Of a DNA stretch of 64,000 bases, positions 10,942 through 63,810 are shown piece by piece. Where the stretch lies: positions 54,870,001 to 54,934,000 of the forward strand of contig NW_027361688.1 in assembly GCF_039654945.1 (NCBI RefSeq), read 5' to 3'. Within the stretch, counting starts at the first letter, position 1; each line of letters starts with the position of its first letter. The stretch is from Dendrobates tinctorius (Eukaryota). The notes beneath the pieces were generated by a model that had not been told where the DNA came from, did not search any database, and saw only the letters and a program-made list of their open reading frames with translations. A program made the position numbers and the translations under genes.

Positions 10942-11132
10942 CCTTGTCTATGTTTGAAATGTTAAAATCTTCTTTTTTTCATGTAATCCAAGTGTAAAAT
11001 ATCCTTAGCTTTCTTCTTTATGCAACCAGCATCAGGCACATCCGAGGCAGAAATAACGGTTGGTATTCCTCTGTACATCTATGCATTTGTTTTTCCCTAG
11101 CAGAGCTTTTCTAGAGCCTATCTCTTTTCCTT

Positions 11133-11176
11133 CTTGGTAAACAGTGGCACTATGAGGCCAAAGTGGGGTACTGCAG
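11133..11176 (-). promoter_or_regulatory. Degenerate Pcdh promoter CSE, exon 2
   Basis: Same position and spacing as the other CSEs, but the + strand core is CAGTGGCACT instead of CAGCGGCGCT, and CCAAT reads CCAAG. Confidence 0.85.
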
Positions 11177-11829
11177 CACAATGATTATTTCTTATTGTAA
11201 ATTACTACATTTTCAGTATCTGAGATATAAAGAACCTTAAACAAATAATAATAAATAATAAAAAATATTAATATGGTTAAATCCATAACGACAGAAAAAA
11301 AATTATATATCACTGTACCAAAACTTTTCATGTAAAATACATTTTCTATAAGAAAAATATGTGACATATTTTTTAAATAAAAATGATGAATGTTATATTA
11401 CAGAAATTCTGTTTATATATTGTATATTAATAAATTCAGTATGAATGCTGAATGTTAAAGAAAATAAAATACACAATACTAATTTACATTAATAATTTAA
11501 ATAATAATAATAATTATTATAATTAATAATTTAAAACTTGTTGCCGACAATGAAAAATCTGTACAAAAATGCATAATATTGAAGGTCTCTGATGCACAAA
11601 ATGACTTATTGGGTCCTCCATTATGCCTTGTTTAAAGGGAATATGTCAGAACAATCAACCCTAGTAAGTCATCAATATGGGCATGTATGTCGTAAGAAGC
11701 TGAAAAAGTCGACACCTCGATATCTGTGATCTGATGACTTATTACAAAGAAATCCCTGTTTTTCTTATGTGTAAATGAGCTGTTTCCCCAATATTTTCCC
11801 AGACGTAATTCACACTTCTAATAGGACCT

Positions 11830-12280
11830 CCTCCACCCTTATACGTTCATTACTCAGTCTCCCCCAAGACTTCTCCCGAGTATCTCCATCCTCTAGAATT
11901 TGTGCCCCAACACATACGATTGTCTCCCTCATTTTGAACATCCAGACAAAGCTTGAAAACTCATCTATTCAAGATAACTTATAGCCTGCAACGACCCCAC
12001 TGCCACCTCACCATTGCTAGAGCTGCCACAACCTGCAACCTATAGTCTCCTCCGTCTGCACCCTTTATACTGTAAGCCTTTAAAGGCAGAATGCGCGCTC
12101 TCACTCTACGAGTCCTTCATTGTTGTTTTGTTCACTGCAATATATATTTAGATTTTGCATGCAACCCTTATCATGTACCACACCATGAAATCAATGGAAC
12201 TCTAAAAATAAATAATAATAATGATATTAATAATGATGATGAAAAAAAAAAAAAAAAAAATAATAATAATAATAACAACG
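11830..12280 (+). mobile_element. Older L2 3'-end fragment with microsatellite tail
   Basis: Similar to 14860-15298 (caagacttctcccga; catgtac..caccatg.aatcaatgg) and ends in an AAT/A-rich tail. Confidence 0.7.
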
Positions 12281-13140
12281 ACCACTATGAGACTTTTTCT
12301 TGTCCAAATCTAAAAAATTCAAGTATCATACTTATACACAAATTTGTACCTAAATATTAATATTTACATGATTAGACTAATAAGAGGTCAGTTTGTGACA
12401 GCAGAGACTTAAGAGAGACCAGACAGTATCTGCTCTTGTTGAGAGGCTTGTAGCACTAAGAATTTCTTCATTAGGATTTCCCACATCTTTAAAAACTTTT
12501 GTATTAAAATATTGTGCTTGGCAAAGTGATTCTCATATCTCTAGATTCTACGATCATAGTTTCAAAGAGTAGGTCCCCTTTTAACCAGATTTCTGCACTC
12601 TAGATTTATAATTTACTGAATTAATAATAATTATGTATTTAATGTACTTTCATGCCATGAGAGGTAACAGGCAGTCAGAGTTATTTCCTCTTTGTTCTGT
12701 TCATCATGTATTTTTTCATGTACATTTGTTACTTATTGCTAATTAAAAGTTAAAGTACAAATTTAGTTTAAATCTCTGAAGCTATAGATTTAAACAAGAT
12801 TTAAACAAAATTTTTACTTTTAACTTTTTGTCTCTTGCATACTGTTGTGGTATAAAAAATTACTTTAGTTGGAGCACTGAAGTGTAAATCTAACGTAGAA
12901 GGTATATCAGTAACATTTACAGCATTTAGAAAAGCTCTATCCACAAGAACAATATCTACATATTATTACCAACTGTAAAATATAAAAAAATGACCAGCAA
13001 CTATAGGAGATCTCTATAGCAAAAGCTTTAAAATACAATCTGATGTATATATTTTATATTTTTTAAGCAAAGAATGAAAGTATTTATACAACTGGTAGAA
13101 ATAAGGAAAAGGGATGATGCCCAACCTCTTATATTTCTTC

Positions 13141-15298
13141 CAGCGGCGCTGGAAGAAAACAAATTCGCAAAATGACTTCACCACATTCAAACAGGCAACA
13201 CTCGATTTCAAATCTGCCCTCACCTCTGCTAAACAGGACTACTTCACAACCCTCGTATCTTCCCTATCTTACAACCCAAAACAGTTATTGAAAACTTTTA
13301 ACTTCCTCCTCCGCCCACCACTGCTTCCTCCAACCTCCCTCATCTCTGCCGATGACTTTGCCACACACTTCAAAAACAAGACTGACCAAACAAGGCAAGT
13401 CTTCATCATTCAACCACCACAACCCCTTTGTATACCAGACCAATGCCCAAACCCCATAACCTCACTCTCCAACATTACTGAAGGGGAGCTTAATCGCCTC
13501 TTCTCCAAATCGCACCTCACAACCTGTGCACTTGACCCCATCCCATCCCACCTCCTCCCCAACCTCACCACCACATTTATCCCATCCCTAACCCACCTCT
13601 TCAACCTATCACTAACGTCCGGTACCCTCCCTTCTGCTTTCAAGCAGGCCACAATCACACCTATCCTTAAAAAGCCAACCCTCAACCCAACCGCTATGTC
13701 CAGCTATCGCCCAATATCATTGCTTCCATTCGCTTCCAAACTCCTGGAACAGCATGTCCACACTGAACTTTCCTCCCACCTATCATCTAACTTGCCCTTT
13801 GACAATCTGCAATCTGGTTTCCACCCCCATCACTCTACTGAGACAGCCCTGACCAAAAATACTAACGACCTACTTACAGCCAAATCAAATGGACAATACT
13901 CTATACTCCTGCTTCTAGACCTGTCCGCTGCATTTGACACAGTTGACCACTGCCTCTTACTACAGATCCTCTCCTCCTTCGGCATCAAAGGCCTTGCCCT
14001 ATCCTGGATCTCCTCATACCTTTCCAACCGCACATTCAGCGTCTCCCACTCCCACACCACCTCCTCATCCCACCCTCTCTCTGTTGGAGTCCCCCAAGGC
14101 TCTGTTTTAGGACCCCTACTCTTCTCAATCTATACACTTCGTCTGGGGCAACTCATAAAGTCCCACGGATTCCACTACCACCTTTATGCTGATGACACTC
14201 AGATCTACCTCTCTGGCCCAGAAGTCACCTCTCTGCTGTCCAGAATCCCAGAGTGTCTATCAGCCATATCCTCCTTCTTCTCCTCTCGCTTCCTCAAACT
14301 CAATGTAGACAAATCTGAACTCATCATCTTTCCTCCATCTCACAGACCTTCTTTACCCGACCTAGCTATAACAATTAATGACATCACACTTTCCCCAGTA
14401 CCAGAAGTCCACTGCCTCGGAGTAACCTTTGATTCTGCCCTGTCCTTCAAACCGCACATCCAAGCTCTTTCTACCTCCTGTCGCCTCCAGCTCAAAAATA
14501 TTTCCAGAATGCGTCCTTTCCTCAACCCTCAATCTACTAAAATGCTTGTGCCTGCCCTCATCATCTCCCGCCTCGACTACTGCAACATCCTTTTCTGTGG
14601 TCTCCCTGCTAATACCCTCGCACCTCTCCAGTCCATCCTTAACTCTGCCGCCCGACTAATTCATCTCTCTCCTCGCTACTCCTCCGCTTCTCCCCTCTGC
14701 AAATCTCTTCACTGGCTCCCATTCCATCAGCATATCCAGTTCAAATTACTAATTCTGACCTACAAGGCCATCTGTAACCTGTCTCCCCATATGTCTCTGA
14801 ACTAATCTCCCGATACCTTCCCTCACGTAATCTCCGGTCCTCCCAAGACCTCCTTCTCTCCTCCACACTTATTCGCTCCTCACCCAACCACCTCCAAGAC
14901 TTCTCCCGAATAGCTCCTATTCTCTGGAATTCTTTGCCCCAACAAGTCCGACTATCAACCACATTTGGATCCTTCAGACGGAACCTGAAAACCCACCTCT
15001 TCAAGAAAGCCTACAGCCTGCAATGACCCTGCTACCTCCTTCTCTCTCACCACTACCAGTGATATCACCTCAACCAACACCGGAACTGCTGCAACCCACC
15101 AACCTACTGTCTCCTTCCCCACCATCCTGTAGCATGTAAGCCCGAAAGGGCAGGGTCCTCTCTCCCCTCTGTATCAGTCTGTCATTGTTAGTTTGTTTAC
15201 TGTAAGTGATATCTGTAATTTGTATGTAACCCCTTCTCATGTACAGCACCATGGAATCAATGGTGCTATATAAATAAATAATAATGATAATAATAATA
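13141..15298 (+). mobile_element. 5'-truncated L2/CR1-group LINE with a largely intact reverse transcriptase frame
   Basis: ORF 13114..14805 has [37 protein letters not shown] and YADDTQ. It frameshifts near 14790, lacks the endonuclease and ends in a (TAA)n tail at 15270-15298. Confidence 0.92.
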
Positions 15299-15817: not shown

Positions 15818-16979
15818 GTGAAGAACTAAAACATTGCCCAAGAAATCTTGTGGGCAAAAACCCTTCACAAAGAAGAAAGGCACACAGAAGGCTCACAAGA
15901 ACAGGCATCAGTCACCTAAGTGTTTTGCTTTTTTTTAAAACCTTGCCAATATTTAACCCATTCCCGACCCATGATGCCTACGTAGGCGTCATGAAAAGTA
16001 GTGCCCAAACGACCCATGTTGCCCCCGTAGGCGTCATGCTATAAATAGCGCTCCTGCAGGTTGGGTGACCGGGGTCAATGAAAGGTCACCCGACCCGTAC
16101 ACAAAGGACCCTTTGTGCTTCACCACGGGGGGGTGGCTTAGCCCCCACGTGGCTACAATTGCTCTGATTGGCTGTTGAAAGTGAAACAGCAAATCAGAGT
16201 GATAGTAATATTTCATCAATGAAATTTGATGAAATATTACAATCCAGCCATGGCTGATGCTGCAGTAGCATCGGACATGGCTGGAGACTCTAATTTAACT
16301 CCCCCACACCGACTGGTGGGGGCGATCAGCCTCCGCAATGGACTGACAGCAGCAATGGGCTGCTGCTGTCACGATCTGCCCCCCTCCCCTTCCCTCCGAT
16401 CCCCCTACAGTCCGATCCCCCCTCACCCTCCCTGGTACCTGTCACGTCTCGCTCTGGCTCCCGGTGTCCCACCGTCCCTCCTGCATGGGCGCCGCCATCT
16501 TTGAAAATGCGCAGTACGATTGTAATATTTCACCAATTAAATTTGGTGAAATATTACAATCGGTCCATGGCCGATGCTGCAATAGCATCGGCCATGGCTG
16601 GAGACAGCAATCAGACCCCTCACCCATCGACTGATGGCGCCGATCAACTGCCACCACCGACTGACGGCAGTGATCAGACACCGCATTCATCATCAGGTCC
16701 CCTCCCCCTTCCCTCCTCTCCCCCCAGCCTTCCGATCCCCCCACCGGCCCCGGTACCTCCTGTCCCTCTGGCCATCCCGGTGTCCTGCGTCATGGGCGCC
16801 GCCATCTTGGAAAATGGCAGGTGCATGCGCAGTGCGCCGGCTGCAGATTCATTCATTTATTTTGATCACTGTGAGAAACTCTCACAGTGATCAAAATAGA
16901 AAAAAGTAAATAAACCCCCATTATCACCCCCATAGGTAGGGACATATAATAAAATAAAGAAAATATTTTTATTTTTCCA

Positions 16980-17335
16980 TTAGGGTTAGGTTTGGAATTA
17001 GGGTAAGGGTTGGAAATAGGGTTAGGGCTGAAATTAGGGTTAGGGGTGGAATTAGAGTTAGGGCTGGAATTAGGGTTGGGTTGGAATTAGGGTTAGGGTT
17101 GTGATTAGGGTTATGGTTGGAATTAGGGTTAAGGTTGTGATTAGGGTTAGGGTTGGAATTAGGGTTAAGATTAGGGTTAGGGGTGGGTTGGGGTTGGGAT
17201 TAGGGTTAGGCTTGTAGTTAGGGTTAGAGTAGGGATTAGGGTTAGGGGTGTGTTGGGGTTAGGGTTGTTGTTAGGGTTATGATTAGGGTTGGATTAGGGT
17301 TAGGGGTGAGTTGGGATTAGGGTTGGAGTTAGAAT
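16980..17335 (+). repeat. Degenerate interstitial (TTAGGG)n telomere-like array inside the piggyBac-like element
   Basis: Many TTAGGG units interspersed with TTGGAA/TTGTGA/TTGGGA variants; recurring 18-mer GGAATTAGGGTTAGGGTT-like period. Confidence 0.9.
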
Positions 17336-17339
17336 TGAG

Positions 17340-19260
17340 GGGTTTCCACTGTTTAGGTACATCCGGGGGTCTCCAAACGCGACATGGCACCACCATTTAT
17401 TCCAGCCAATTTTGCGTTTAAAAATTCAAACAGTGCTCCCTCCATTCCGAGCCCCGATGTGTGCCCAAACAGTGGTTTACCCCCACATATTGGGTATCAG
17501 CATACTCAGGAAAAATTGCACAACAACTATTGGGGTCTAATTTCTCCTGTTACAATTGGAAAAATAAAAAATTGGGGGCTAAAATAATTTTTGTGGAAAA
17601 AAATGATTTTTTATTTTCACGGCTCTGCGTTATAAACTTCTGTGAAGCACTTGGGGGTTCGAAGTGCTCACCAGACATCTAGATAAGTTCCTTGGGGGGT
17701 CTAGTTTCCAAAATGGGGTCACTTGTGGGGGTTTCTACTGTTTAGACACATCAGGGGCTCTGCAAACGTAACATGATGCCTGCAGACCATTCCATGAAGT
17801 CGGCATTTTAAAACGTCACTACTTCCCTTCCGAGCCCCGACATGTGCCCAAACAGTGGTTCCCCCCACATATGGGGTACCAGCTTACTCAGGACAAACTG
17901 TACAACAACTTTTAGGGCCCAATCTATCCTGTTACCCTTGTGAAAATAAAAAATTGTGGGCTAAAAAATCATTTTTTGAGAAAAAAATATTTTTTATTTT
18001 CATGCTTTTGCGTTATAAACTTCTGTGAAGAACTCGGGGGTTAAAATTACTCACACATCTAGATTAGTTCCTTTGGTGGTCTAGTTTCCAAAATGGGGTC
18101 ACTTGTGGGGGGTTTCCACTGTTTAGGCACATTAGGGGCTCTGCAAATGTAACATGATGCCCGCAGACCATTCCATCAAGTTGACATTTCAAAACGTCAC
18201 TACTTCCCTTCCGAGCCCCCACGTGTGCCCAAACAGTGGTCCCCCCACATATGGGGTACCAGCATACTCAGGAGAAACTGGACAACAACTTTAGGAGTCC
18301 AATTTTTCCTGTTACCATTGTGAAAATAAAAATTAGCGGGCTAAAAAATCATTTTTTGAGGAAAAAAATATTTTTATTTTCACAGCTCTGCGTTATAAAC
18401 TTCTGTGAAGCACTTGGGGGTTCAAAGTGCTCACCACACATCTAGATAAGTTTCTTTGGGGGTCTAGTTTCCAAAATGGGGTCACTTGTGGGGGAGCTCC
18501 AATGTTTAGCACACAGGGGCTCTCCAAACGTGATATGGTGTTCGCTAACGATTGGAGCTAATTTTCCATTCAAAAAGTCAAATGGCACTCCTTCCCTTCC
18601 GGGCCCTGCCATGCGTCCAAACTGTGGTTTATGACCACATATGAGGTATTGGTGTACTCAGGAGAAATTGCCCAACACATTTTAGGATCCATTTTACCCT
18701 GTTGCCCATGTGAAAATGAAAAAACTGAGTCTAAAAGAAAATTTTTGTGAAAAAAGTACTTTTTTTTTTAAGGATCAATTTGTGAAGCACCTGGGGGTTC
18801 AAAGTACTCACTATGCATCTAGATAAGTTCCCTGGAGGGTCTAGTTTCCAAAATGGGGTCACTTGTGCGGAGCTCCAATGTTTAGGCACACAGGGACTCT
18901 ACAAATGCGGCATGGCAATGCTAAATATTCCAGCATATTTTCCATTCAAAAAGTCAAATGGCGCTCCTTCCCTTCTGAGCCCTGCCGTGTGCCCAAACAG
19001 TGGTTTATGACCACATATGAGGTATCGGTGTACTCAGAAGAAATTGCCCAAAAAATTTTAGGATCCATTTTATCCTATTACCCATGTGAAAATGAAATAA
19101 ATGATGCTAAAAGAAAATTTTTGTTGGAAAAATTAAAATGTCCATTTTTTCCTTCCATGTTGCTTTAGTCCCTGTGAAGTACCTGAAGGGTTAATAATCT
19201 TCTTGAATATAGTTTTGAGTAGCTTGAAGGGTGCAGTTTTTAGAATGGTGTCACTTTTGG
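17340..19260. repeat. About 380-bp tandem repeat, roughly 5 diverged copies, inside the piggyBac-like element
   Basis: Anchor ctagtttccaaaatggggtcacttgtg at 17701, 18081, 18463 and 18841, with a degenerate copy near 19240. Confidence 0.85.
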
Positions 19261-21191
19261 TCATTTTCTGCCATATAGACCCCTCAAAGTGACTTCAAAT
19301 GTGAGGTGGTCCCTAAAAAAAGGTTTTGTAAATTTTGTTGTAAAAATGAGAAATCGCTGGTCAACTTTTAACCCTTATAACTTCATAGCAAAAAGTTTTG
19401 TTTGCAAAATTGTGCTGATCTAAAGTTGACATGTGGGAAATGTTATTTATTAACTATTTTGTGTCACATAACTGGTTTAACAGAATAAAAATTAAAAATT
19501 TGAAAATTGTGACATTTTCAAAATTTTCTCCAAAGTTCCATTTTTTCACAAATAAACGCAAAAATTATCGACCTCAATTTACCATTAATATGAAGCCCAA
19601 TATGTCATGAAAAAACAATCTCAGAATCGCTAGGATGCGTTGAAGCGTTCCTGAGTTATTACCTCATAAAGGGACACTGGTCAGAAATGCAAAAAATGGC
19701 CAGGTCATTAAGGTCAAAATAGGCTGGGTCATGAATGGGTTAAATAATACAACATATTTAAACTGTATTAAAAGAAAACTGTAATGCCTTTCATTATCAC
19801 ACAAATATGTGCATAAGATTTACTACATATAATTGTCTTTTCTATCCCTTTATCACAAAGAAAATCAATTTTGCAAGTTAGTTTAGCCACAAGAGCTGTA
19901 ATCTGAAATATAATTTTCTGCAAATTATTACTGTTCCTGATTGTGCATCCAAAATTAACTATTAACATCTTTCATTATAATATAAAATGTAAATAAAAAA
20001 ATATAAGATTTACAAAACAGAAAGATTCGATTACAGAATATAAATCTTTATAAGAATATAGACATATTAACTCAAGAAGTGATCACAGGAGACAACATTT
20101 CCCCAACAATAACCTCGCTTAATTTCATTGCAAAGCCTAATAAATAAGTGTGATTGTGAGCCCTTCCATGAGTAGGCTTCCTGCCAAATCTAAATCCCTC
20201 AATGACAAACATGTATCATTGGATCACCATGAGCTCTAAACCTGCCCAAAACAGACAATGAACTTCGCAATAAATGTTTTAGTCTCTCTTAAAATGTTCT
20301 GTGCTATAGTCATTTCCATTTCAATGGTGTTTTGCATTTTCTACATTGACTATTTACATATAGAATTATCCGGATGCCACAAAGCGTTTATTAATCTAAG
20401 GACACTTAACTGATGATTTAGTTTTGTCACAGAAACTACAGTATAATAGATTAGTGGGCTGATTCATCAGGACTGGCAGAGTTTATGCTCGTGCTACACC
20501 AGTCTTACTGGAGAACAAGGCACCAAATTCATTGAGGCACATAACACAGTAAATTCAGCACCTCTTCTAAGCCGTATGCACCTACTTGCTCTGCACCAGA
20601 AATGCTACTCCTGTCAACACCTGGAGTAGCTCTTCTGACGTATAAAACTCATTGTTCACCAGCTCTTCACATCTGTCCATTTTGGTGAAGCCCATTAAAA
20701 TTGGCGTGAAAATTCAAAAAGTTGCCAAACTCTTCATTGTGCAAAAATTTTGCAAATTTCATGGTTTTCACACCAGTTTTCTGGCATAAAAGTTTTGATG
20801 AAATTCCCCTAAGTTTTTAAAACTATTTAAAAAATCTGCAGGATGTGCTACAACTTTTTAAATTATTTTAATGTGACCTTTAAAAGGCAAAATCTGTAGC
20901 AAACTCAGCAAAATGTGCAACAAAATCCACATATAACATGATGCAAACAATTTTAGTGGCAAAATAGTCAGCTACTTTATACAGTTTGCTTTTTCATCCA
21001 TACAACGTGCCATTCTTTGATATGTCTTGTATTGCATCTTAGATCATTCTGCTACTATGGAAAATAACAACTTTACTACAGCAGATAGCAATTTGGTGTT
21101 GAAACCAACACTTGGTTGTTATTGGCTAATCAATAAAACAATAAGTTTACAACATATGATTTTGAGCTCCCATCATATTTTTTGCACTCAC

Positions 21192-26275: not shown

Positions 26276-26821
26276 TATATTGGAGCTGGTATTCCACAAC
26301 TGGCCTCTGCTGCTCACAAAGCCTTGCCAGCATATGCAGTGTGGAGTTCCAGTGCATGGGGATGTCACACAACAGGCAGGAAGCTGGCACTTGCATGCGC
26401 TGCTGCTGCACTGTCAGAGTGGCAGCAGCTATAGTGGAAATGGGTGCTGATGCAAAGTACCTTGACCAGAAGCTATGGCAAATCTGGATAGGCTTTCAGA
26501 AACTGCTGAATTACCAAGTTCAGCATGTGTGCCAAGCATGGTATGCACAGGTGCATCTCACAAAATTAGAATATCATCAAAAAGTTAATGTAATTCAATT
26601 CTTCAATACAAAAAGTGAAACGCATATATTAGATAGAGTCATTACAAACAGAGAGATCTATTTCAAGTGTTTATTTCTGTTAATGTTGATGATTATGGCT
26701 TACAGCCAATGAAAACCCAAAAGTCATTATCTCAGTAAATTAGATATCAAAGAAATAATTTTCGGATTAACCGTGCGCTGCTAGACAAAACGACTCCTTT
26801 CCAGATTGTGTACTTTTATTT

Positions 26822-26862
26822 TCCCAACGCGTTTCGAAGTTTCAAACTTCTTCCTCAGGGGA
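26822..26862 (-). ncRNA. Minimal Penelope-type hammerhead ribozyme motif
   Basis: Minus strand TCCC-CTGAGGA-A-GAAGTT(TGA)AACTTC-GAAACGCGTT-GGGA. Confidence 0.65.
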
Positions 26863-28064
26863 TGATATGTACAAACAGACAGAGTAGCTCCCAGTTTTAT
26901 ACATACAAATTTCAAATATTGGCGCCAATGGTCACATGTTACAGGGAAAGAATGTCAAAGGTCATCAGTACCAAAAAAATGTACAGAAAAATGTTTAAAA
27001 CTGCATTGTTTCTACCTTAATACATTCTCTTAAATTATTTATTTGCAGGTCATAAAAAGAAAAAGAAGAATAAATGAAAAAAGCAATGAAATAAATATAT
27101 AAAAATATGCTAGAACTTATAAAAAAGGAAGAAGGAGCAGTAAATCACAGCTCAGACCATCATCCTAAATGGGCAGACGAAAGAGAACGAGAAAAAAAGA
27201 AAAGAAGAAAATGATGGATAATGAATATACATATATATATATATTAAAAAGATTCTTTTATTCAATATAATAAAAATGTTTTAAAAGTTTTATATAAAAA
27301 TATTCGCATAATATGTACTTAATAAAAATTATTAGAGATAAAAATTTTTTTTTTTATGTGTATTTTGTATTTAAAAATTTCTTCTTTTTGTCTTCTTTTT
27401 CTGTGAGCCATTGAGTTTTCACAGATGTCTTTGCAAACTTTTTTCATTAACCCCTATCATCCTGTACTTGTAAACGTGTACCTATAACTACAGTTTTTTA
27501 TCAATCACTTTTTAAATTGGTTAAATTTTTAAATACAAAATACACATAAAAAAAAAAAATTTTTTTTTTTTATCTCTAATAATTTTTATTAAGTACATAT
27601 TATGCGAATATTTTTATATAAAACTTTTAAAACATTTTTATTATATTGAATAAAAGAATCTTTTTAATATATATATATATGTATATTCATTATCCATCAT
27701 TTTCTTCTTTTCTTTTTTTCTCATTCTCTTTCATCTGGCCATTTAGGATGATGGTCTGAGCTGTGATTTACTGCTCCTTCTTCCTTTTTTATAAGTTCTA
27801 GCACAGGTCTATCATTTTATATTTTTATATATTTATTTCATTGCTTTTTTCATTTATTCTTCTTTTTCTTTTTATGACCTGCAAATAAATATTTTAAGAG
27901 AATGTATTAAGGTAGAAACAATGCAGTTTTAAACATTTTTTTGTACATTTTTTTGGTACTGATGACCTTTGACATTCTTTCCCTGTAACATGTGACCTTT
28001 GGCGCCAATATTTGAAATTTGTATGTATAAAACTGGGAGCTACTCTGTCTGTTTGTACATATCA

Positions 28065-28106
28065 TCCCCTGAGGAAGAAGTTTGAAACTTCGAAACGCGT
28101 TGGGGA
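28065..28106 (+). ncRNA. Minimal Penelope-type hammerhead ribozyme motif (mirror copy)
   Basis: tcccctgaggaagaagtttgaaacttcgaaacgcgttgggga. Confidence 0.65.
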
Positions 28107-30049
28107 AATAAAAGTATACAAGTACACAATCTGGAAAGGAGTCGTTTTGTCTAGCAGCGCACGGTTAATCCGAAAATTATTTCTTTGATATCTGATGATT
28201 TATGGTCACGGAGTGGCCATTTGGATGTGCAGCAGCTTTGACTTCTATTCCTTTATGCCTCCAACTCTCCTGCTATTGGTGAGTATAACAGCTTGAACTA
28301 TATCTCTTTTACCTGGGTAAGACCCTATTGCGCTCTTTCTATTTTAGTTTTAACCACTATCTCTGTAAATTAGAATACGTTATAATACCAGCTTGAAAAA
28401 ATTATTTTAAAATCTGAACTGTTGGCCTATGGAAATGTATGTTCAGTAAATGCACTCAATACTTGGTTGGGGCTCCTTTTGCATCAATTACTGCATCAAT
28501 GTGACATGGCAGGGAGGCAATCAGCCTGTGGCACTGCTGAGGTGTTATGGAAGCCCAGGTTGCTTTATAGCAGTCTTCAGCTCATCTGCATTGTTGGGTC
28601 TCTGGTGTCTCTCATCTTCCTCTTGACAATATCCCATAGATTCTCTATTGGGATTAGGTCAGGCGAGTTTGCTGGCCATCCAAGCACAGTGATACTGTTG
28701 TTTTTAAACCAGGTATTGTTCCTTTTGGTTGTGTGGACAGGTGTAAAGTCCTGCTGGAGAATAAAATTTCTGTCTCACAAAACTATCAATGATTGTGGAT
28801 ACTTCACACTAGACCTTGGGAATCAAGGTTCCAGAGTCTGGAGGAAGAGTGGAGAGGCACATAATCCAAGCTGCTTGAGGTCTAGTATGAAGTTTCCACA
28901 ATCAGTGAAGGTTTGGGGAGCCATTTCATCTGCTGGAATAGGTACAATCTGTTTTATCAAGATGAAAGTCAGTGCAGCCGTCTACCAGGAAATTTTTAAA
29001 GTACTTCGTGCTTCCCTCTGCCGACAAGCTTTTTGGAACTGGAAATTTCATTCTCCAGCAGGACTTGACACCTGTCCACACAACCAAAAGTACCAATACC
29101 TGGTTTAAAAACAACAGTATCACTGTGCTTGATTGGCCAGCAAACTATCCTGACCTTAACCCCATAGATTCATATGGGGTATTGTCAAGAGGAAGATGAA
29201 AGTCACCAGACCCAACAATGCAGATGAGCTGAAGGCTGCTATCAAAGCAACCTGGGCTTCCATAACACCTCAGCAGTGCCACAGGCTGATCGCCTCCATG
29301 CCACGTCACATTGATGCAGTATTTGATGACAAAGTAGCCCCGACCAAGTATTGAGTGCATTTACTGAACATACAGTTCAGTAGGCCAACATTTCGGATTT
29401 TAAAATCATTTTTTCAAGCTGGTGTTATAAAGTATTCTAATTTACTGAGATAATGACTTTGGGGTTTTCATTAGCTGTAAGCCATAATCATCAACATTAA
29501 CAGAAATAAACACTTGAAATAGATCACTCTGTTTGTAATGACTATATCTAATGTATGAGTTTCACTTTTTGTATTGAAGAACTGAAATAAATTAACTTTT
29601 TGCTGATATTCTAATTTTGTGAGATGCACCTGTATGTGAGCTTCACTGCCATCACCAGGTTATGCCCATTTTAACACACAACCATGCATGGTTTGAGGCT
29701 CATCAGCAAAAGCCACAGATCTATATGGTCTGTTATTCCTATAACTAACTGTGCCGCAGTGTGCAGCTTGTCTCCTTGACAAATTAGCTTCAGCGGAGCC
29801 TGAAATCCTCTATGTTGACAAGCCTAAACGGTAATATTTCAGCATCAAGCAGCCTGGAAATGTGTCTGTCTAGCATTTGGGCCTGTTGGTGGTGGCTGCA
29901 ATGTTTCTTTTTTATTTCAAGGCCTGGGGAAGGGACAGCTGAATGCTGTGTTGGGATAAAGACTTGGAAGTGCGTGATGATGCGTCAGAATATGCAAGAA
30001 GGTGCAAGGTGGGAGGCATTTGACTGATACATAGCCCTCATGTTTTTAA

Positions 30050-38887: not shown

Positions 38888-39135
38888 TTACTCTGGGAAA
38901 CTCCAGGTCATTCTGGGAGATTTGGCAAATATTTGGTTACTGAATCTGGCAGATTTTACACACAAGAATGTGAATAATGTATCAAAAATAATTTATCTTC
39001 TCCATCTGGACAGTAAAATTATTGAATATATATTTGGAAGAGCAACAAGCTAAAGGAAATACTATATATCTCAATACTTAGATAAATAAAACTACTCAGC
39101 ATTGAATGTAGAAAATCTCATCCGGTTTCACTTAC

Positions 39136-41556
39136 CCCTGTAGGGTTACTCGCAGGCAAATTGTTTTGTAGGCTTTCATTCCCGAGTTCAGAATCTTCAG
39201 CATCAATGAGATTAGCCACAGGGACACAGGGATTTGGTTTCATGTAAGTAAAGTCATTTTCACTGGATTCCAGAGCCACACAGACATTATATGAATAAGG
39301 CAAAGTCATTGATCCATTTGTGTACTGAGAAATCAAACTGGGATCAACATAAGGATATAGGTTTGAACTTAGACCATCCAATACTGGGGGTGGTGAAGGC
39401 TTCTTGCATTTTGATATAACGACCAACATAAAAGTTATTATGAACAAAAGCGAAATGAGTGCAAGAGAAATGACTAAGTATAACTGCAAATTGGACTGAG
39501 GGTCTTCATTACTGATTTTATCATTGAATCTGGGAACCACTTGCTCAAAATTGTTGGCAACAATGAGATTTAAGGTAACTGTGGATGAGAGCGAGGGGTG
39601 TCCATTGTCCTTCACCATCACTATGATCTTATGATTCAATACATCCCTTTCTTGAAAGATATGTGATGTCCTTATTTCTCCAGTATGCTGACTGATGGCA
39701 AAATAAGAATGTTCTGATTCTTGTAAAAAGTGATAAGAGAGCCAAGAATTATGTCCAGAGTCTATGTCTATGGCCACCACCTTGGTAATTAAAGAACCTT
39801 GTTCACAGTCAAAAGGGACCATTTCAAATGCAGCCGTACCTCCACTATCTATCGAGGGATATAAGATTTTTGGTGAATTATCATTTTGGTCTACTATGTG
39901 GATAATTAATGTAGCATTGCTGCTCAAAGATGGCGATCCATTGTCTTTAGCAGTGATATGTATCAGAAACTCTGATCGCTTCTCATAATCAAATGATCTT
40001 TGAGCATAGAGAACTCCAGTCTCTATATTTATAGAAAGGTAAGAAGAAGATGTCTGGTCTTCTGTCACATTGCTGGAAATTGAGTAAATTATTTTGGCAT
40101 TGTCTCCAGTATCAGGATCTGATGCTTGTATACTGAATACTGATGCTCCTGGTAAATTATTTTCTTGCACGTAGGTATAAAAGATGGATTTAGAAAACAA
40201 TGGTAGATTATCATTGACATCTGATATCTCCAGGATTATGGATATTTTACTAGACAGTGGTGGAAATCCTCTATCAGTTGCCAGAATAGTGATATTATAC
40301 CTAGATACTTTTTCTCTGTCCATGGGGGCAGCAGTGACAACTTTGTAATAAGTATTAGAGGATGATATCAAACTAAAAGGTGTTTCTTCCAACAATTTGC
40401 AGTCCGTTTCTCCATTTTCTTCCGAATCACGATCATGGACTTTAATAAGAGCTATCATTGCACCAGGTGAAGTATCCTCAGCTACGGGACTCAATAATGA
40501 ATTAACTGATATCTCAGGAGCATTGTCATTCTCATCTATAGCTTCTATCAGTACTTTACAATGGGCCATGAGGCCTCCGCCATCCTTTGCTTGGACAGAT
40601 ATTTCATAATTTTTTGCTAATTCATAATCTAATTTATCATTTACTTTTATTTCCCCAGACACAGGGTGGATACTGAATGTTCCAGAACGATGAACATTTC
40701 CTGATGTTTTACTAAAGGAATATGTGATCTGTCCATTGGCCCCTTCATCCTTGTCTGTGGCATTCACTGTGATTACTATGGTATTTATTGGTGTATTCTC
40801 ATATACACTGACTTTATATACTGACTGGGTAAATATTGGGAAGTTATCATTAGCATCAGTAACAATGACCCTTATTAAGGCAGTTCCAGATCTCACAGGT
40901 TTGCCTCCATCCATTGCTGTTAATATAAGCTCATGGAGACTATGCGTCTCCCTATCTAATGGCTTCTCTAGAACAAGCTCTAGAAATGTACTACCATCTG
41001 GGTTTCTGTCTTCACTCAGTGTAAAATACTGATTATCACTGAGCTTATATGTCTGCACAGAGTTAGAACCAATATCTGGATCTTCTGCCGTCTGTAAAGC
41101 AAACCTGGTCCCTGCTGATGTTAATTCAATTGTCTCTACAGAAAGCATGTCAGGGAAGAATGCAGGAGAATTATCATTTATATCCTGGATCTCTATTTTT
41201 ATTTGAAAAATATTGAATGGATTTTCAACCACCGCATCAAAGGTCAAGAAACATGAATCCTCTGTCCTACACAATGATTCTCTATCTATCCTGTCCTTCA
41301 CATGCAGATTTCCATTATCCAAATTTACATAAAAATATTTTTCTGAAACATGTGACAAAATCCTCAACTTTCTAGATGAGAGCTGCTTCATGTCTAATCC
41401 AAGGTCATCTGCAATATTTGCTATAACAGAGTCTTTCCTCATTTCTTCTACAATGGAATAATGAATCTGACCGGAGACTGAATGACACAGCCAAGAAAAT
41501 AAGATAGAAATTGTTACTTGCCATCTGACTGCTTTCCAGATCTGTGGAGGTTCCAT
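39136..41556 (-). CDS. pcdhg: Protocadherin-gamma variable exon 5
   Basis: ORF 39118..41634; first ATG at 41556 (MEPPQIWKAVRWQV). Donor GGG|GTAAGT at 39136/39135. Confidence 0.95.
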
Positions 41557-41779
41557 GTCTTTCCTTTCTGTCTTAAATCTGATATTTAGATAGCAAAATG
41601 TATAATCCACTGAAGAAGAAAATGTATAAATCAATCCCCTGTTTTCTTAAAATAACATTCAATATCCAGTATTTTTCATAGAGAAAATCCAGAATCTGTC
41701 TGTGTCTTTGCTTGCAGTTGTGTATTGTGTGTGAATGATGAAACTACCAGTGGATCTATAGTTCTGTTTTCTGCTCCTT

Positions 41780-46624: not shown

Positions 46625-48278
46625 TTAAAGAAGACCTATAACCACATGAAATTTATCCAGTATTTACTTTTATTTTTTCTCCCCTAAGTATGACATTTTT
46701 TGCTTTTCTTAAGGGGTATTCCCATCTCCAAGATCTTAATCCCAATATGTAGTAGGTGTATTAATAATATTAGCAAATATCTTCAATTAGAAATGTAATA
46801 TAGTTTTTCTTATTTGTTATGTCTCTTTATTCATTGACAGGCATTGCAAGACCATAGGTATCCATCATTTTGAGTTTTATGACCATTAGCAACTAACTAA
46901 CAAACTGTCACTTTATTAGTGGAAGTAACCGTGGATAGCTAAGGTCCTGCAATGCCTGCACATGAGGAAAGAGATATAGCGAATAAAAAAACTATACTGC
47001 CAGTTTATCCAGAACCATAAGGTGGATTTTAAAAAACAGAAACCAGAAAACTCAGGGGAACCATGGAAATAATATGAGAGCAAAATCTAGACGTTTAATC
47101 TTGTGACAGGTCTTTTCAAATGTGTAATACAGTATGTAATACACATTTACATTTGAGAGATATCTAAGTAAATATATTTCTATATATTTTTAAATATGCT
47201 ATTGATATGAAATCTCACCAGATGTCAGCAACCCATTCAATTCACACAGGAAAAGAAATCAACCCAAAGATATCCATAAATTAAGCTATATGTTATAATG
47301 AGAAATGACACAGGGAAAAAGTATTAAACATATGAAGAAAAAGATGTAAAAAGCCATGGAAAGTCATAAAACATGATGAAATCTATCAATAATAAGAAAG
47401 TAATTCTGTCACATACTAAAAAAATATAAGGTGGTTCAACTGATGGCCCATAAAGCTTCCTTATTACCAAGGTGCCACAAAAAAATCATCTCATGATGGG
47501 TAAAGCCAGTGAGCTGTCTCATGACCTTCACAACCTTATTGTTGCTAGTAAAACATACTAATAGCATTGGTTACAGAAGAATTTTTAAACTACTAAAGGT
47601 TCCAGTGAGCACTGTTGGGGCTATAATCTGAGAGTGAAAAGAACATAATTTCACCATAAACCGCCATAACCAGGTGCTCCTTGCAAGATTTCAGACAGAG
47701 GAGTAAAAACAATTTTCAGAAGAGTGGTCCAAGGGCCAAGGACCACTTAAAGAAAGCTAAAGAAACATCTGGAATCAGTAAGTACAATAGTTGTGGGGGC
47801 TTCCTTTTTATCCCCATTGGCACCCTGAAATCATGACTGTGTGGTCCTGTTTGCCATGGCAATTCAAGAACAAATAGCGGCCTTAGAGTCTGATGGCTGT
47901 TGTAACCTGTTCAGAAGTTAGCAGCATTTCGGTGGTAAAAATACACATTTTCATTTCTGTCATGCCACTTTGCATTAATTCCTGAAAATCACCTGAAGGG
48001 TTAATAAACTACGTGACTGCATTTTTCGATATGTCAGGGGGTGCTGTTTTTAAAGTGGCATAACTTTTGGGGGTTTTCCAATATATAGGACCCCAAAGGC
48101 CCTTCAAACCTGGATAGGTCCCTAAAAACATAAATTTTGTAAATTTCCTTGATAAAATGACGAGAGCCAACAGCTCGAAACACCGTGTCTGCAAATTGAG
48201 ATTCTGATTTGGCTTGTATCCTAAGTCATACTACAAGACTCGTTAAAGGGTTGATTGTGACTTGTAGGATCGCTTCTA

Positions 48279-48294
48279 CCAATAGGTGGCGCTG
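48279..48294 (+). promoter_or_regulatory. Candidate CTCF motif inside the retrozyme monomer (second copy at 48610-48625)
   Basis: CCAATAGGTGGCGCTG is close to the CTCF core consensus CCASYAGRKGGCRC. Confidence 0.6.
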
Positions 48295-48462
48295 TAGAGT
48301 AAAAGTCCTCTTTCTTTCTGAAGAGGCAATTTGCATATTATTTTCCCAGAGGAGCATTGCACGGCGAATAAGTCTCCTTACCTTGACAAGCCACAGCTGG
48401 CATGTCACTCTCCGCAAGGAGAAACCTTACTTCTTAGACCCTAGTCCAGAGCCTCTCACCTT

Positions 48463-48544
48463 GCCAAATCAGATCTCATACTTTGCACTGACGAGAGCCA
48501 ACAGCTCGAAACACCGTGTCTGCAAATTGAGATTCTGATTTGGC
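48463..48544 (+). ncRNA. Type I hammerhead ribozyme (predicted cleavage after GUC at 48520)
   Basis: TTTGCA-CTGACGA-GAGC(CAACA)GCTC-GAA-ACA(CCG)TGT-C-TGCAAA. Stem I extends via TCTCA/TGAGA and GCCAAATCAGA/TCTGATTTGGC. Confidence 0.9.
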
Positions 48545-49469
48545 TTGTATCCTAAGTCATACTACAAGACTCGTTAAAGGGTTGATTGTGACTTGTAGGA
48601 TCGCTTCTACCAATAGGTGGCGCTGTAGAGTAAAAGTCCTCTTTCTTTCTGAAGAGGCAATTTGCACTTGATAAAATGAAAAATTACTGCTACATTTTTA
48701 ATCCTCCTAAAATGATAACAAAATAAAAGAACATTTTACAAATCGTGCTGATGTAAAGCAGGCATGTGGAAAATGTTATTTATGAATGCTTTTCTGTGGT
48801 ATGACTGTCTGGATTAAAGGGATAATCATTTAAAGTTTGAAAATAGCTAATTTTTTAACATTTCTCTCAAATTTCTGATATTTTTTATAAATAAAAACAA
48901 AACATATTGACCTAAATTTACCATTATAATAAAGTACAATGTGTCACGAAAAAACATTCTCAAAATCACTGGGATTTGTTGAAGCGTTCCAGAGTTATTA
49001 CCGTATAAATTGACACTGGTCAGATTTAAAAAATGTGGCTCTGTCACTAAGGGGTTAAAAGAAAACTATGAGTAATGCACTCAACTTCCATGACCTGTAT
49101 GCACGTTCACCACACAAGACTCCATTGCTGAACAAAAAGCATGTTCATGCACATTTAAAATTTGTTCAACAACATTTAGACAAGCATATGGGAGAATACT
49201 GGAAAAATACAATACTGTTTTTTCAGATGAGACCAAAATTGAACCATTTGGATGCCATAATACACACCAAGTTTGGAATACAAAAGACACTGCATATCAC
49301 CATGCAACACCATATCAACAGTTAAGTTTGGAGGTAGGAACGTCATGGTTTTGGCCTTTTTTCAGTAAACGACATTGGCAAACTTTATATTATTGAAGGA
49401 ATGGCCAAATGTACCAACATATTCTTGAAAAATGTCTGATGCCATCTACCAGGATGATGTAGATGAAAT

Positions 49470-51516: not shown

Positions 51517-52551
51517 ATGAAATGAGGGTGGACATTTCAGCAAGACAATTATCCCAAACACACAGTTAGGGAAACTCACAATTAGTTTCAGAAAAGAAAA
51601 TAAAGTTGCTAAAATGGCCCAACCAATCACCTTGCCTGGACCCAATAAAATATTAATTGAAGGAACTAAAGCTAACAGTTGATAGAAGAAGCTCACTGAA
51701 CCTTCAGAATTTGAAGAGTTTTTGTGTAGAAGAATGAGACAAAATTACACCTGACCAATGCATGCGACTAGTTTCTCTATACTGGAGCCGTCTTTACCTT
51801 CACTGCAAATTTATATTCACTGAAATTATCTTTTCTCTTAGCCAATCCAGAAAAACACTCTAATTATGTCACTTCCTAGAAAAACACAATGGTATTCTAA
51901 TATTACTGAAGAAAAAAGAGACATAGAACACACAACCAAAAATCATACATTAATCTACTGCAAAAAATAAATGGAAATTCTTAGTTAACATACTCTTACA
52001 AGCACTATGATGAAATAAAAGCATGGTCTTGATGTAACAGCACAACATGATAAACAGCAGACGTGAAAATTCATATTATTTTAGATACAAGTAGCTACTG
52101 TGTGCTATTGCAATTACTCCAGCTTTCTGTTGATCATATGACAAACTGCATTTTATGTGAATACTGTATATTTAAAGTCATTGCTTCTTTCAAATAATCT
52201 TCGTGGGTCCCACCAGGCCAAAACAGACCAGCCTAAAGTAACTTCCAGTTTTTTTCCTACATTTTCTAGATTCTGAAACAAGTGAGATTGCAAACCTATG
52301 CTTCAATGTCTTAAACATTAAAAATCATTCCATTATTCCAGAAATAATAGAAAGCACGTAAGTGCCACAGTAGGTTGTGCTATGGTTGTCAGATCATCAG
52401 ATTTTAGTCTTCACATTTTGGTGCATACGGTATATTAAAAACATATGGCAGATCCTATCAGTGGCTTTAGCTTAGAACATTGTTTATTTAGAAGGCTCAT
52501 TATGCCTTCTGAATATCACAAAGCTTTTAGTTTCATCCTTAATTAACTAAC

Positions 52552-54975
52552 CTGTGGTGGATCTGAGGTTGGTAAAGCTTCTTTCACATTTTCACTTGTA
52601 GGTCCAGGATCATCAGCGTCAATGAGCTTATCCACAGGAACATCTTGATTTGGTTTCATATAAGTAAAGTCACTTTCACTGGCATCAAAGCCAACACAGA
52701 CATTGTAGGAGTAAGGAAAAGGTAATGTTCCATTCTCATAGTGAGAAAGGATTCTGGGATCAACTGGAGGATATAAATTGGAGCTGAGGTTACTGAACAT
52801 TGGTACGGGTTCTGATTTCTTGCACTTTGAGATAATGGCCAACATCACAGTGATAATAAAGAGCAGTGAAATTAATCCAAGGAAGATGATTAAGTAAAAC
52901 TGTAAATTAGATTGTGGATTTTCTTCCGTTCTTTCCTCATGGAACTTGGGAAACATCGGTTGTAAGTTGTTTGCAATAATGAGATTTAGGGTAACGGTAG
53001 ATGAGAGAGAGGGGTGTCCATTGTCCTTCACCATCACCACGATCTTATGATTCAATACATCCTTCTCTAGAAAAATACGAGATGTTCTTATTTCTCCAGT
53101 ATGTTGAGTAATGGCAAAATAAGAAGGCTCTGATAGTTGTAGAAAATGGTAAGAGAGCCAAGAATTGTGTCCAGAGTCCGGGTCTATGGCCACCACCTTA
53201 GTTATCAAGGACCCTTGTTCAGAATCAAAAGGGACCATTTCATATGCAGTCACACCTCCACTGTCTGCTGATGGGTATAATATTTTTGGTGCATTATCGT
53301 TCTGATCCACAATACGGATAAGCAATGTTGTGTTGCTGCTCAGAGGTGGAGATCCATTGTCTCTGGCATTTATTTGTATGTAAAACTCTTTTTGTTGTTC
53401 ATAATCAAATGATCTCTGGGCATATATGACCCCAGTCTCTATATTGATGGAGAGGTAGGAGGTTGCTGTGAGTTCTTCTATATCAGCAGTGTAGATGGAA
53501 TAAAATATTTTTGCATTGTCTCCAGTATCAGGATCTGAGGCTTGTATGCTGTATATGGAAGACCCTGGTAAATTGTTCTCCGGGACATATACAATATAAG
53601 TAGTTCTGATAAACATTGGAGGGTTGTCATTGACATCTGATACCTCCAGAGTGATGGTTCTTCTGCTGGAAAGTGGAGGAGATCCTCTGTCAGTGACTAA
53701 AATAGTAATGTTATAACTAGAAACCTTCTCTCTGTCCAAAGAACTTGTGGTAACAATTCTGTAATAATTGTCAGATGATAGCACTAAATTAAATGGCATT
53801 TCTTCCAAAAGTTTACAGTCCACCTCTCCATTCTGTCCTGAGTCTTTATCATGAACTTCAATCAGAGAGATCATTGTACCCAGAGCCGAATCCTCAGGAA
53901 TTGGAGAAGACAATGATGTGAGCGATATCTCAGGAACATTGTCATTCTCATCCATAACTTCTATCAATACTTTACAATGGGCTACAAGACCTCCTCCATC
54001 TTTTGCTTGTACAGAGAGCTCATAAATTTTAGTTAGTTCGAAATCTAACTTATCATTTGCTTTAATATCTCCGGATATGGAGTGAATGCTGAATGTTCCT
54101 GTATGATGGACATTTCTAGATGTTTTACTAAAGGAATACATGATCTGTCCATTGACCCCTTCATCCTTGTCTGTGGCATTCACTGTGATTATTGTGGTAT
54201 TTATTGGTGTATTCTCATTTACACTTACTTTATATACTGACTGGGTGAATATTGGGAAGTTATCATTAATGTCAGCAACAATAACCCTTATTAAGGCAGT
54301 TCCAGATCTCACAGGTTTGCCTCCATCCATAGCTGTTAATATAAGCTCATGAAGACTCTGTGTCTCCCTATCTAATGGTTTCTCTTGGATAAGCTCTAGA
54401 GACCTACTACCATCTGGATTTCTGTCTTCACTCAGTGTAAAATACTGATTATCACTGAGCTTATATGTCTGCACAGAGTTAGAGCCAATATCTGGATCTT
54501 CTGCCGTCTGTAAAGCAAACCTGGTCCCTGCTGATGTTAATTCAATAGTCTCTACAGAAAACATGTCAGGGAAGAATGCAGGAGAATTATCATTTATATC
54601 CTGAATTTCTACCTTTGTCTTAACAATATTGAATGGATTTTCAACCACAGCATCAAAGGTTAGGTAGCAAGAAGCTGCACTGCCACATAATGTCTCCCTG
54701 TCTATCTTGTCCTTAATATAAAGATTTCCACTGTCAGGATTTACATAGAAATATCTCTCTGCTGATCTGGATACAATCCTCAGTTTTCTAGATGAGAGCT
54801 CCTTAACATCTAATCCAAGGTCATCTGCAATATTTGCTATAACAGAGTCTTTCCTCATTTCTTCTACAATGGAATAATGAATCTGACTGGAGACTGAATG
54901 ACACAGCCAAGAAAATAAGATAGAAAATGTTACTTGCCATCTGAGTCCTTTGTATTTTTCTGTATAAGGTTTCAT
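52552..54975 (-). CDS. pcdhg: Protocadherin-gamma variable exon 6
   Basis: Intact 810-aa ORF. Donor CAG|GTTAGT at 52552/52551. Confidence 0.95.
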
Positions 54976-55180
54976 CTCATTTATCAGCTTCCGAATTCTT
55001 CCAAGAAATAGTATTTGGTAAACCAGTATTGAAATTCCAGAATATTATAGAAAATATTCTTATAAATCCAGTAAATATTGTAGAGAGCATGCAGATAATG
55101 TCTGCCCCCTCCTTGTGCAGATCTGCAGTATGTGTGCAAAGAAAACACCAGTGGATATCCAGTTCTGCATTTCTCTTTTT

Positions 55181-55225
55181 ATTAGGCAAACAGCGGCGCT
55201 CTGAGGTGAAACTGAGGAACTGCAG
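55181..55225 (-). promoter_or_regulatory. Pcdh promoter CSE, exon 6
   Basis: + strand attaggcaaacagcggcgctctgaggtgaaactgaggaactgcag. Confidence 0.9.
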
Positions 55226-55414
55226 TTTAGATTTTTTTTAGCATTCCATATTAGCACTAGGTCTTTTTAGATTTATAGACAATAAATATATTGAAATACT
55301 AATTTTACATTTTCAGAATCTCAATCAATCAATTAGTTTGTATACAAAATCTGCAATGGTTCTTTTCACCTAGAAAGTTGCCTTAAAGGTATATAGCTTT
55401 GCTTTCAAAACAAT

Positions 55415-62918: not shown

Positions 62919-63810
62919 CAGTGGGGAAGTAAGTATTCAACATGTCATCTATTTTCTAAATAAATATTTTGCTAAAGGTGGTATTGACATGAAATTCAAA
63001 TGTTGATAACACGATCCAATCCACACAAACCATAGATGTCCATAAACTAAGATATGCATAATAATGAGAAATAAAACAGGGAAAAAGTATTGAACATATT
63101 TACTGAAATTTAATTAATACTTTGTACAAAAGCCTTTGTTGGTGGTAACAGTTTCAAGGCGCCTCCTGTATGGAGAAACTTGTTACAGGAATTTCTCAGG
63201 TGTGATTTTGGCCCATTCTTCCATGCAAACACTCTACAAATCCTGAAGGTTCCATGGTCTCTTTCTCTGAACTCTGAGCTTTAGTTCCTCCCATAAATTT
63301 TCTTTTGGATTCAGGTCAGGTGATTGGCTGGGCCATTCAAGCAGATTTATTTTATTTCTCTGAAACCGATTGAGAGTTTCCTTGTCTGTTTTTGTCTTGC
63401 TGAAATGTCCTCCCTTGTTTCATCTTCATCATCCTAGTAGATGGCAGCAAATTTTTATCAATAATGTTTAGGCACATTTTGTCCACTCATCCTTCCTTCA
63501 ATTTTATGAAGTTCGCCAGTATTGTATGCTGAAAAACAGCCCCACATCATGATGTTCCCACCTCCAATCTTTCTTCACTGTTGGTCTAGTGTTTTTTGGG
63601 GTATTATGGAGTGCCTTTTGGCCTTCAAATAGCTTTTGTATTATTGCATCCAAAGAGTTCAATTTTGGTCTCATCTTACCAGACTATATTCTCCCTGAAT
63701 TTCACAGGTTTGTCTGCAGGTTGAACAAACTTTAAATATGCTTGAACATGCTTTTTATTCAGTAATGGAGTCTTGTGTGGTGAGCATGCATACAGGCCAT
63801 GGAGGTTGCT
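62919..63810 (-). mobile_element. Decayed Tc1-family fragment related to the 47200 element
   Basis: Starts CAGTGGGGAAGTAAGTATT and shares ataatgagaaat..acagggaaaaagtatt with about 47300. Minus-strand transposase-like remnants ([15 protein letters not shown]). Confidence 0.7.

Follow-up and report, generated by a model that had tools for sequence, protein, structure and literature searches.

Very probable single-event insertion of a 1.53-unit hammerhead retrozyme into an older repeat of the protocadherin gamma cluster of a dendrobatid frog

Retrozymes of the metazoan kind, which lack long terminal repeats (LTRs), have been described in salamanders and clawed frogs. In the axolotl, retrozymes of 331 and 353 nt carry weak hammerhead ribozymes that are inefficient as monomers but cut well as dimers (PMC7229834). 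They give rise to abundant linear and circular RNAs, are circularised by an RtcB-type ligase, have a GC content below 50% and are flanked by target-site duplications (TSDs) of more than 4 bp (PMC7229834). In the model of Cervera and de la Pena, target-primed copying of the circular RNA yields a tandem cDNA that is integrated by the enzymes of an autonomous element (PMC7229834). Among the amphibians sampled by Li et al., seven of seven harbored non-LTR retrozymes, and the 57 families of Xenopus are related to the pseudo-LTRs (pLTRs) of Penelope-like elements (PLEs), with a particular PLE pLTR linked to 24 of the 57 (bioRxiv 10.64898/2026.07.22.740005). PLE insertions themselves are typically 5′-truncated partial tandems whose TSDs vary in length (Craig et al. 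2021, bioRxiv 10.1101/2021.04.23.441226). Here, we analyze a 64,000-nucleotide stretch of DNA from the frog Dendrobates tinctorius (NCBI RefSeq assembly GCF_039654945.1, contig NW_027361688.1, positions 54,870,001 to 54,934,000 of the forward strand; hereafter the window), in which an earlier reading made without database searches, the sequence-only reading, had placed a young hammerhead retrozyme. The element in question is a 506-bp insert (48161-48666, plus strand), and the locus very probably records one event, in which a 1.53-unit hammerhead retrozyme inserted into an older repeat between variable exons of the protocadherin gamma (Pcdh-gamma) cluster.

A direct-repeat search of the window gave the boundaries of the insert, the spacing of its units and its TSD. 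An exact direct repeat of 178 nt (48158-48335 and 48489-48666, identical at 178 of 178 positions) recurs at a spacing of 331 nt, and the insert lies between two exact copies of the 13-nt sequence CTTGATAAAATGA, one on the left (48148-48160) and one on the right (48667-48679). It comprises 1.53 units of a 331-nt non-coding unit: a full unit, counted between successive GUC cleavage sites (48190-48520, plus strand), is followed by a partial second unit of 146 nt (48521-48666, plus strand) within the second arm of the 178-nt repeat. In unit coordinates, the insert begins at monomer position 303 (or 300), makes one complete turn and stops at position 146. The sequence-only reading had proposed just this arrangement, with a 331-bp monomer, an identical 178-bp overlap and a 13-bp TSD, and the search recovered each part of it. 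Given the base composition of the window, the chance of the 13-mer recurring at the position abutting the other end of the insert is about 5.5e-8. At the left junction, the three nucleotides TGA (48158-48160) fit the TSD and the element alike, the full copy reading C|TGACGAG there, so the true TSD length is between 10 and 13 bp.

The 331-nt unit has a GC content of 45.3% and is predicted to adopt a branched, strongly self-paired fold (-100 kcal/mol, z = -3.7). The insert has no evident coding capacity, as its longest open reading frame (ORF), of 109 aa, has no relative among 5.8 billion proteins. The direct-repeat search found no terminal repeats in the insert besides the unit itself, and the unit is without LTR, primer-binding site (PBS) or polypurine tract (PPT). 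A blastn search found no second copy of the retrozyme in the window.

The insert carries a complete type I hammerhead with an extended, bulged helix I (48463-48545, plus strand), as delimited by an Rfam core match and by folding. Rfam family RF00163 (Hammerhead_1) matches at full length over 48482-48526 on the plus strand with 34.7 bits, against a gathering score of 34, and the match has an E-value of 3e-6 in a 3-kb search and of 6.4e-5 over the window. Hammerhead_1 is the only family that reaches its Rfam threshold in the window, and this match is the sole one to do so. All invariant positions of the core CUGACGA...GAAA are present, and cleavage is predicted after C48520, the last letter of a GUC triplet; the GUC triplets of the insert end at 48520 and 48189, 331 nt apart. 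Helix II is formed by GAGC and GCUC around the loop CAACA, a helix II/loop 2 combination that departs from the Rfam consensus, while the long and bulged helix I pairs 48463-48487 with 48521-48545. The core, the helix II and the GUC site at 48520 had all been called from the letters, and the Hammerhead_1 search suggested at the time bears that call out.

Folding of the 98-nt hammerhead stretch gives -34.2 kcal/mol, compared with -17.6 +/- 3.1 kcal/mol for shuffled sequences (z = -5.3). Helix III consists of only 3 bp and a triloop, and the nearest-neighbour minimum free energy (MFE) structure leaves it unformed; the catalytically competent fold lies at -30.7 kcal/mol versus -34.0 kcal/mol for the MFE structure, a gap of 3.3 kcal/mol. 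A contig of a related subfamily (loose ends at 48495) has GGGG/CCCC in helix II instead of GAGC/GCUC, amounting to two compensatory pair changes, and this lends a small piece of support to a ribozyme fold maintained by selection. A literal search of papers for the exact ribozyme sequence gave no match, nor did a degenerate 40-nt hammerhead pattern in public metagenome and viral contig collections, neither of which includes animal genomes.

The hammerhead of the leading, incomplete unit is cut off at the left junction (48158-48189, plus strand). RF00163 matches it over model positions 8-39 only, at 19.5 bits, in agreement with the earlier claim that the upstream hammerhead with its GUC at 48189 is truncated. 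It starts at U4, so that UGACGA through GUC is kept, whereas C3 is missing and helix I has lost its whole 5′ strand, and it is predicted to be inactive. Because the insert holds one complete hammerhead only, the only cut possible in a transcript of the locus would be the one after 48520, and self-cleavage would yield no unit-length RNA. This copy thus appears to be a dead-on-arrival member of a recently active family, with cleavage itself a prediction.

The insert sits within an older interspersed repeat (47806-49053, insert excluded), which is highly repeated in all four public runs (X1, X5, X9 and X15) whose contigs we aligned to 47650-49180. In each of these runs, contigs join 48147 straight to 48667, with 13 letters that fit both sides. 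From their sequence, these contigs are other copies of the host repeat that carry the target once and have no insert, which is to say, empty paralogous sites. The window itself holds such a paralogue, identified by alignment to the flanks (19117-19713, plus strand, 72% identical over 611 nt), which contains no retrozyme and crosses the equivalent site with the target present once, as GTTGTAAAAATGA, at about 19337-19349. Empty paralogous sites with one copy of the target, found both in the window and in the four runs, thus show that the retrozyme is a true insertion. Among the conditions that the sequence-only reading set for its refutation were related piggyBac-like copies carrying the same sequence in place of a single target; the copies of the flanking repeat that we found lack the insert and have one CTTGATAAAATGA-like site each, which favors insertion.

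We also looked for an empty allele and an empty orthologous site. Joints in run X1 were considered as a heterozygous empty allele at the locus and set aside, as they have 33 letters on the shorter side, lie inside the repeat and are not separable from paralogues. In Ranitomeya imitator (locus L001), of a sister genus, the Pcdh exon matches at 87-88% but the intergenic DNA is unalignable, which leaves no orthologous site for comparison. As the inter-exon DNA of R. imitator fails to align, intergenic DNA of the Pcdh cluster appears to turn over fast. A further copy of the host repeat lies at 63494-63808 on the opposite strand (75%), and loose contig ends with a common consensus at 47848 and 49024 suggest that the host repeat is longer elsewhere.

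The retrozyme family is abundant. In each of the two large runs, about 15,000 contigs align across the stretch, a figure that includes the host repeat and counts contigs, not copies. By identity, and again with the host repeat included, they fall into about 1,600 contigs at 99% or more, about 4,000 at 95-99% and about 9,400 at 90-95%. We rejected depth as a measure of copy number, since the depth of a contig adds up several copies and the low-coverage runs offer no reliable single-copy baseline. Contigs of the retrozyme that are 90-100% alike number in the thousands and come from four runs with three organism labels; segments at least 99% alike occur under each label (A, B and D). In a small run, one contig shows a single difference from 48463-48666 and then continues into the remaining letters of the unit; since it reads on into the unit, a near-identical copy that does not end at 48666 must exist. 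Positions 48275/48606, 48373 and 48394 are among several at which the copy studied here departs from the majority of its family.

Because there are many near-identical copies, the family was active recently, and the earlier expectation of a recently active family with other copies is matched by this high repetition and by the many near-identical contigs in public runs. Runs X9 and X15, which carry two other organism labels, likewise contain many retrozyme contigs at least 99% alike, as well as the same host repeat. Such likeness requires a very close relationship across labels, either of the family or of its hosts, with vertical and horizontal spread indistinguishable from these contigs. For the insertion itself, the zero differences within the 178-nt overlap and the duplication give a 95% upper age bound of about 4-10 million years, assuming 2e-9 to 0.8e-9 substitutions per site and year. 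Calling this copy young, as had been done, is a fair description of the absence of differences, but it is not a tight one, the age being constrained only to less than about 4-10 million years.

With a type I hammerhead, a short non-coding tandem unit, a GC content below 50%, a TSD of more than 4 bp and multi-copy dispersal, the frog element shows the sequence-level features of metazoan non-LTR retrozymes, and its sequence supports placing it among them. With the axolotl elements Rtz331 and Rtz353 and with newt satellite 2 it has in common a type I ribozyme, an extended helix I, a very short helix III, the absence of coding capacity and the low GC content, together with a TSD longer than 4 bp and a very high copy number; outside the ribozyme, this comparison is one of published descriptions. 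Its 331-nt unit compares with 327-331 nt in axolotl (PMC7229834) and with about 330 bp for newt satellite 2 (Epstein & Gall 1987, as cited in PMC7229834). The host sets it apart from the salamander elements, being here a dendrobatid frog, and helix III differs in detail, with 3 bp and a triloop in the frog, 1 bp and a palindromic tetraloop in HHR_Amex1, and 2 bp and a tetraloop in HHR_Amex2.

The unit also contains the octamer ATTTGCAT (48329-48336, plus strand), and the 3′ end of the insert cuts a second ATTTGCAT after ATTTGCA (48660-48666), one base short. Newt satellite 2 is reported, in a passage of PMC2220036 citing Coats et al. (1994), to have a small nuclear RNA (snRNA)-type promoter. 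The frog octamer fits the promoter type described in that passage and, by analogy with satellite 2, may be part of a promoter of this kind. Taking length, weak helix III and a putative octamer-containing internal promoter together, one could regard the 331-nt frog family as the anuran counterpart of salamander satellite 2/Rtz331, but we hold this to be doubtful. Were the families homologous, the size and organization of a mobile ribozyme RNA would have been kept since the split of frogs and salamanders.

The retrozymes of Xenopus, likewise an anuran, occur as monomers, dimers and multimers, and the mean consensus length in amphibians is 316 bp (bioRxiv 10.64898/2026.07.22.740005). They are 44% intronic and 56% intergenic and have been proposed as non-autonomous partners of PLEs (bioRxiv 10.64898/2026.07.22.740005); in contrast to the Xenopus families, blastn found no PLE of similar sequence in the frog window. 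Like PLE pLTR insertions (Craig et al. 2021; Cervera & de la Pena 2014, as cited), the frog insert is a partial tandem with a 5′-truncated copy before a full one, has a fairly long TSD of the variable sort and carries its hammerhead in the repeated part. Unlike PLE insertions, it has no ORF of theirs, its hammerhead is canonical and looped with a long helix I, and there is no 30-40-bp ‘tail’ or inverted arm at the site. We considered whether the insert might be a fragment of an autonomous PLE (a pLTR) and rejected this, as there is no reverse transcriptase (RT) or GIY-YIG ORF and the hammerhead is not of the minimal form with a 1-bp helix III. The insert is thus no piece of a PLE, though it may rely on PLE enzymes.

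Plant LTR retrozymes are a more distant comparison. They too are non-autonomous retroelements, and their RNA is cut by hammerheads and circularized (Cervera et al. 2016, PMC4918200), as is predicted for the frog element. Type III hammerheads within LTRs, a PBS and PPT, 4-bp TSDs, circles of 600-1000 nt and the use of Gypsy machinery are found in the plant elements only (PMC4918200). What is new here, then, is the dendrobatid host, together with an unusually clean insertion proven by empty paralogous sites: the text of Li et al. (2026) names no dendrobatid, and none is named in the retrozyme literature as far as we searched. With this result, dendrobatid frogs are known to harbor a hammerhead family that is abundant and was active recently; the view of retrozymes is unchanged. 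Clean cases of this sort help to trace how retrozymes are copied, from the start of the cDNA on the unit, through the number of turns read, to the joining of the 5′ end.

By analogy with published related amphibian elements, the insertion would have begun with transcription of source copies elsewhere in the genome. The type I hammerhead would then cut after GUC, probably as a dimer because helix III is weak, and the 331-nt monomers would be closed into circles by the host tRNA ligase, as in the axolotl elements. Next, the RT and endonuclease of an autonomous, most likely Penelope-like, element would nick the target and copy the RNA from internal monomer position 146 for 1.53 turns. The 5′ end of the cDNA would be joined through the 3-nt TGA microhomology, and a staggered second nick would leave the 10-13-bp duplication. 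With ATTTGCA (48666) regarded as the end of the unit, the product would be a Penelope-type partial tandem, with a 5′-truncated copy before a full copy. That Penelope machinery carries target-primed reverse transcription of a circular or multimeric RNA beyond a single turn is an already published model, which we infer for this locus by analogy. Unit position 146, where the cDNA would have begun, differs from the 3′ end that a linear monomer has after hammerhead cleavage. This internal start and the identical overlap within a heterogeneous family favor a circular, or end-less, template, though an uncleaved multimer from a young array fits too. A bolder reading, which we hold to be doubtful, takes the internal start and the identical 1.53-turn product as direct evidence, in the sequence, that a circular RNA was reverse-transcribed by a rolling-circle route.

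Several observations weigh against this account. The window contains no Penelope RT, its sole RT ORF being of the LINE (long interspersed nuclear element) type, and by blastn the retrozyme has no sequence similarity to a Penelope-like palindrome at 26739-28196. The Rfam score clears the gathering threshold by 0.7 bits only, and contigs of the run guessed to be RNA (X15) cover the flanking repeat as well as the retrozyme. The insert shows neither poly(A) nor an RT signature, so that its sequence proves no RT over a DNA route, and the TGA microhomology fits equally well with priming from the left junction on an RNA of minus polarity. Finally, a single insertion does not distinguish a circular from a multimeric linear template. 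This last point gives room to an alternative with the same element and enzyme, in which the template was the linear, multimeric transcript of an array, or in which the RT jumped between linear monomers. The unit junction GUC|UGC would be identical for array, circle or template jump; multimeric RNAs occur in salamanders (PMC7229834), and ordinary linear elements inserted by PLE machinery also give partial tandems (bioRxiv 10.1101/2021.04.23.441226). Set against this is the 100% identity of the 178-nt overlap in a family where most contigs are 90-99% alike: neighboring units of an older array often differ, while one circle read twice yields identity always. The start at position 146 speaks against a cleaved linear monomer, but not against an uncleaved multimer, and we regard a linear template as a possible, if less favored, source of the insert.

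A DNA route, in which an extrachromosomal circle or an excised piece of an array was captured at a staggered break with no reverse transcription, would account for the missing poly(A) and RT hallmark and for the 3-nt microhomology at one junction, and satellite-like array growth of these repeats is discussed by Li et al. (bioRxiv 10.64898/2026.07.22.740005). We nevertheless consider it improbable, because a clean 13-bp duplication with neither filler nor deletion is what endonuclease-staggered nicks are expected to produce, because a partial tandem with a 5′-truncated leading copy is a PLE signature, and because non-LTR retrozymes co-occur with PLEs across vertebrates (bioRxiv 10.64898/2026.07.22.740005). 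It might also be that the hammerhead match is decayed or due to chance and that the repeat is an ordinary non-catalytic element, similar to a short interspersed nuclear element (SINE) or a satellite, as the narrow Rfam margin and the absence of helix III from the MFE structure could suggest. Against so coincidental an origin stand the complete set of invariant core positions and a GUC whose distance from the previous one is exactly the unit length of 331 nt. The stability of helix I relative to shuffles (z = -5.3), an E-value of 6e-5 over the window for what is its sole match, and the compensatory GGGG/CCCC helix II of the subfamily point the same way, and a weak helix III is a known condition in amphibians. 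We therefore judge a chance or decayed motif very improbable, and prefer the insertion of a hammerhead retrozyme by the route set out above.

The RT ORF of the window lies within the Pcdh cluster (13114-14805, plus strand) and encodes 563 aa with an RVT_1 match at 3.6e-37; its best solved relatives are L1 ORF2p and R2. The palindrome at 26739-28196 is near-perfect and 1.46 kb long, with arms up to 98% complementary, and its layout recalls the head-to-head arms of Penelope-like insertions. Near each of its outer ends it bears a hammerhead-like string, CTGAGGA...GAAACGCGTT, at 26826-26858 (minus strand) and 28069-28101 (plus strand). Found by a regular expression, this pair was considered as a second pair of hammerheads and rejected, as it has no Rfam match even at E-values up to 10.

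Protocadherin variable exons, all of them on the minus strand, account for the large ORFs of the window, and their relatives are named protocadherin gamma-B-like; for a protocadherin product of the window, the best foreign matches are from Ranitomeya, at 86-87%. Exons at 39118-41634 and 52543-54975 enclose the insert, which is intronic for transcripts that start from upstream variable exons, and these flanking gamma-B-like exons agree with the location in the Pcdhg cluster that had been read from the sequence. Since the hammerhead is on the plus strand, the Pcdh pre-mRNA contains just the complementary sequence and would escape cleavage. Being antisense and having one predicted working ribozyme, this copy of the retrozyme is probably inert for the Pcdh cluster. 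One variable exon of the window (8425-10941, minus strand) looks interrupted, being divided between two ORFs (9883-10941 and 8425-9852), while the other six are open over 810-847 aa. In R. imitator L001, the exon most like window positions 52547-55227 occurs twice in tandem, at 9765-12427 and 16351-19012, with 87-88% identity.

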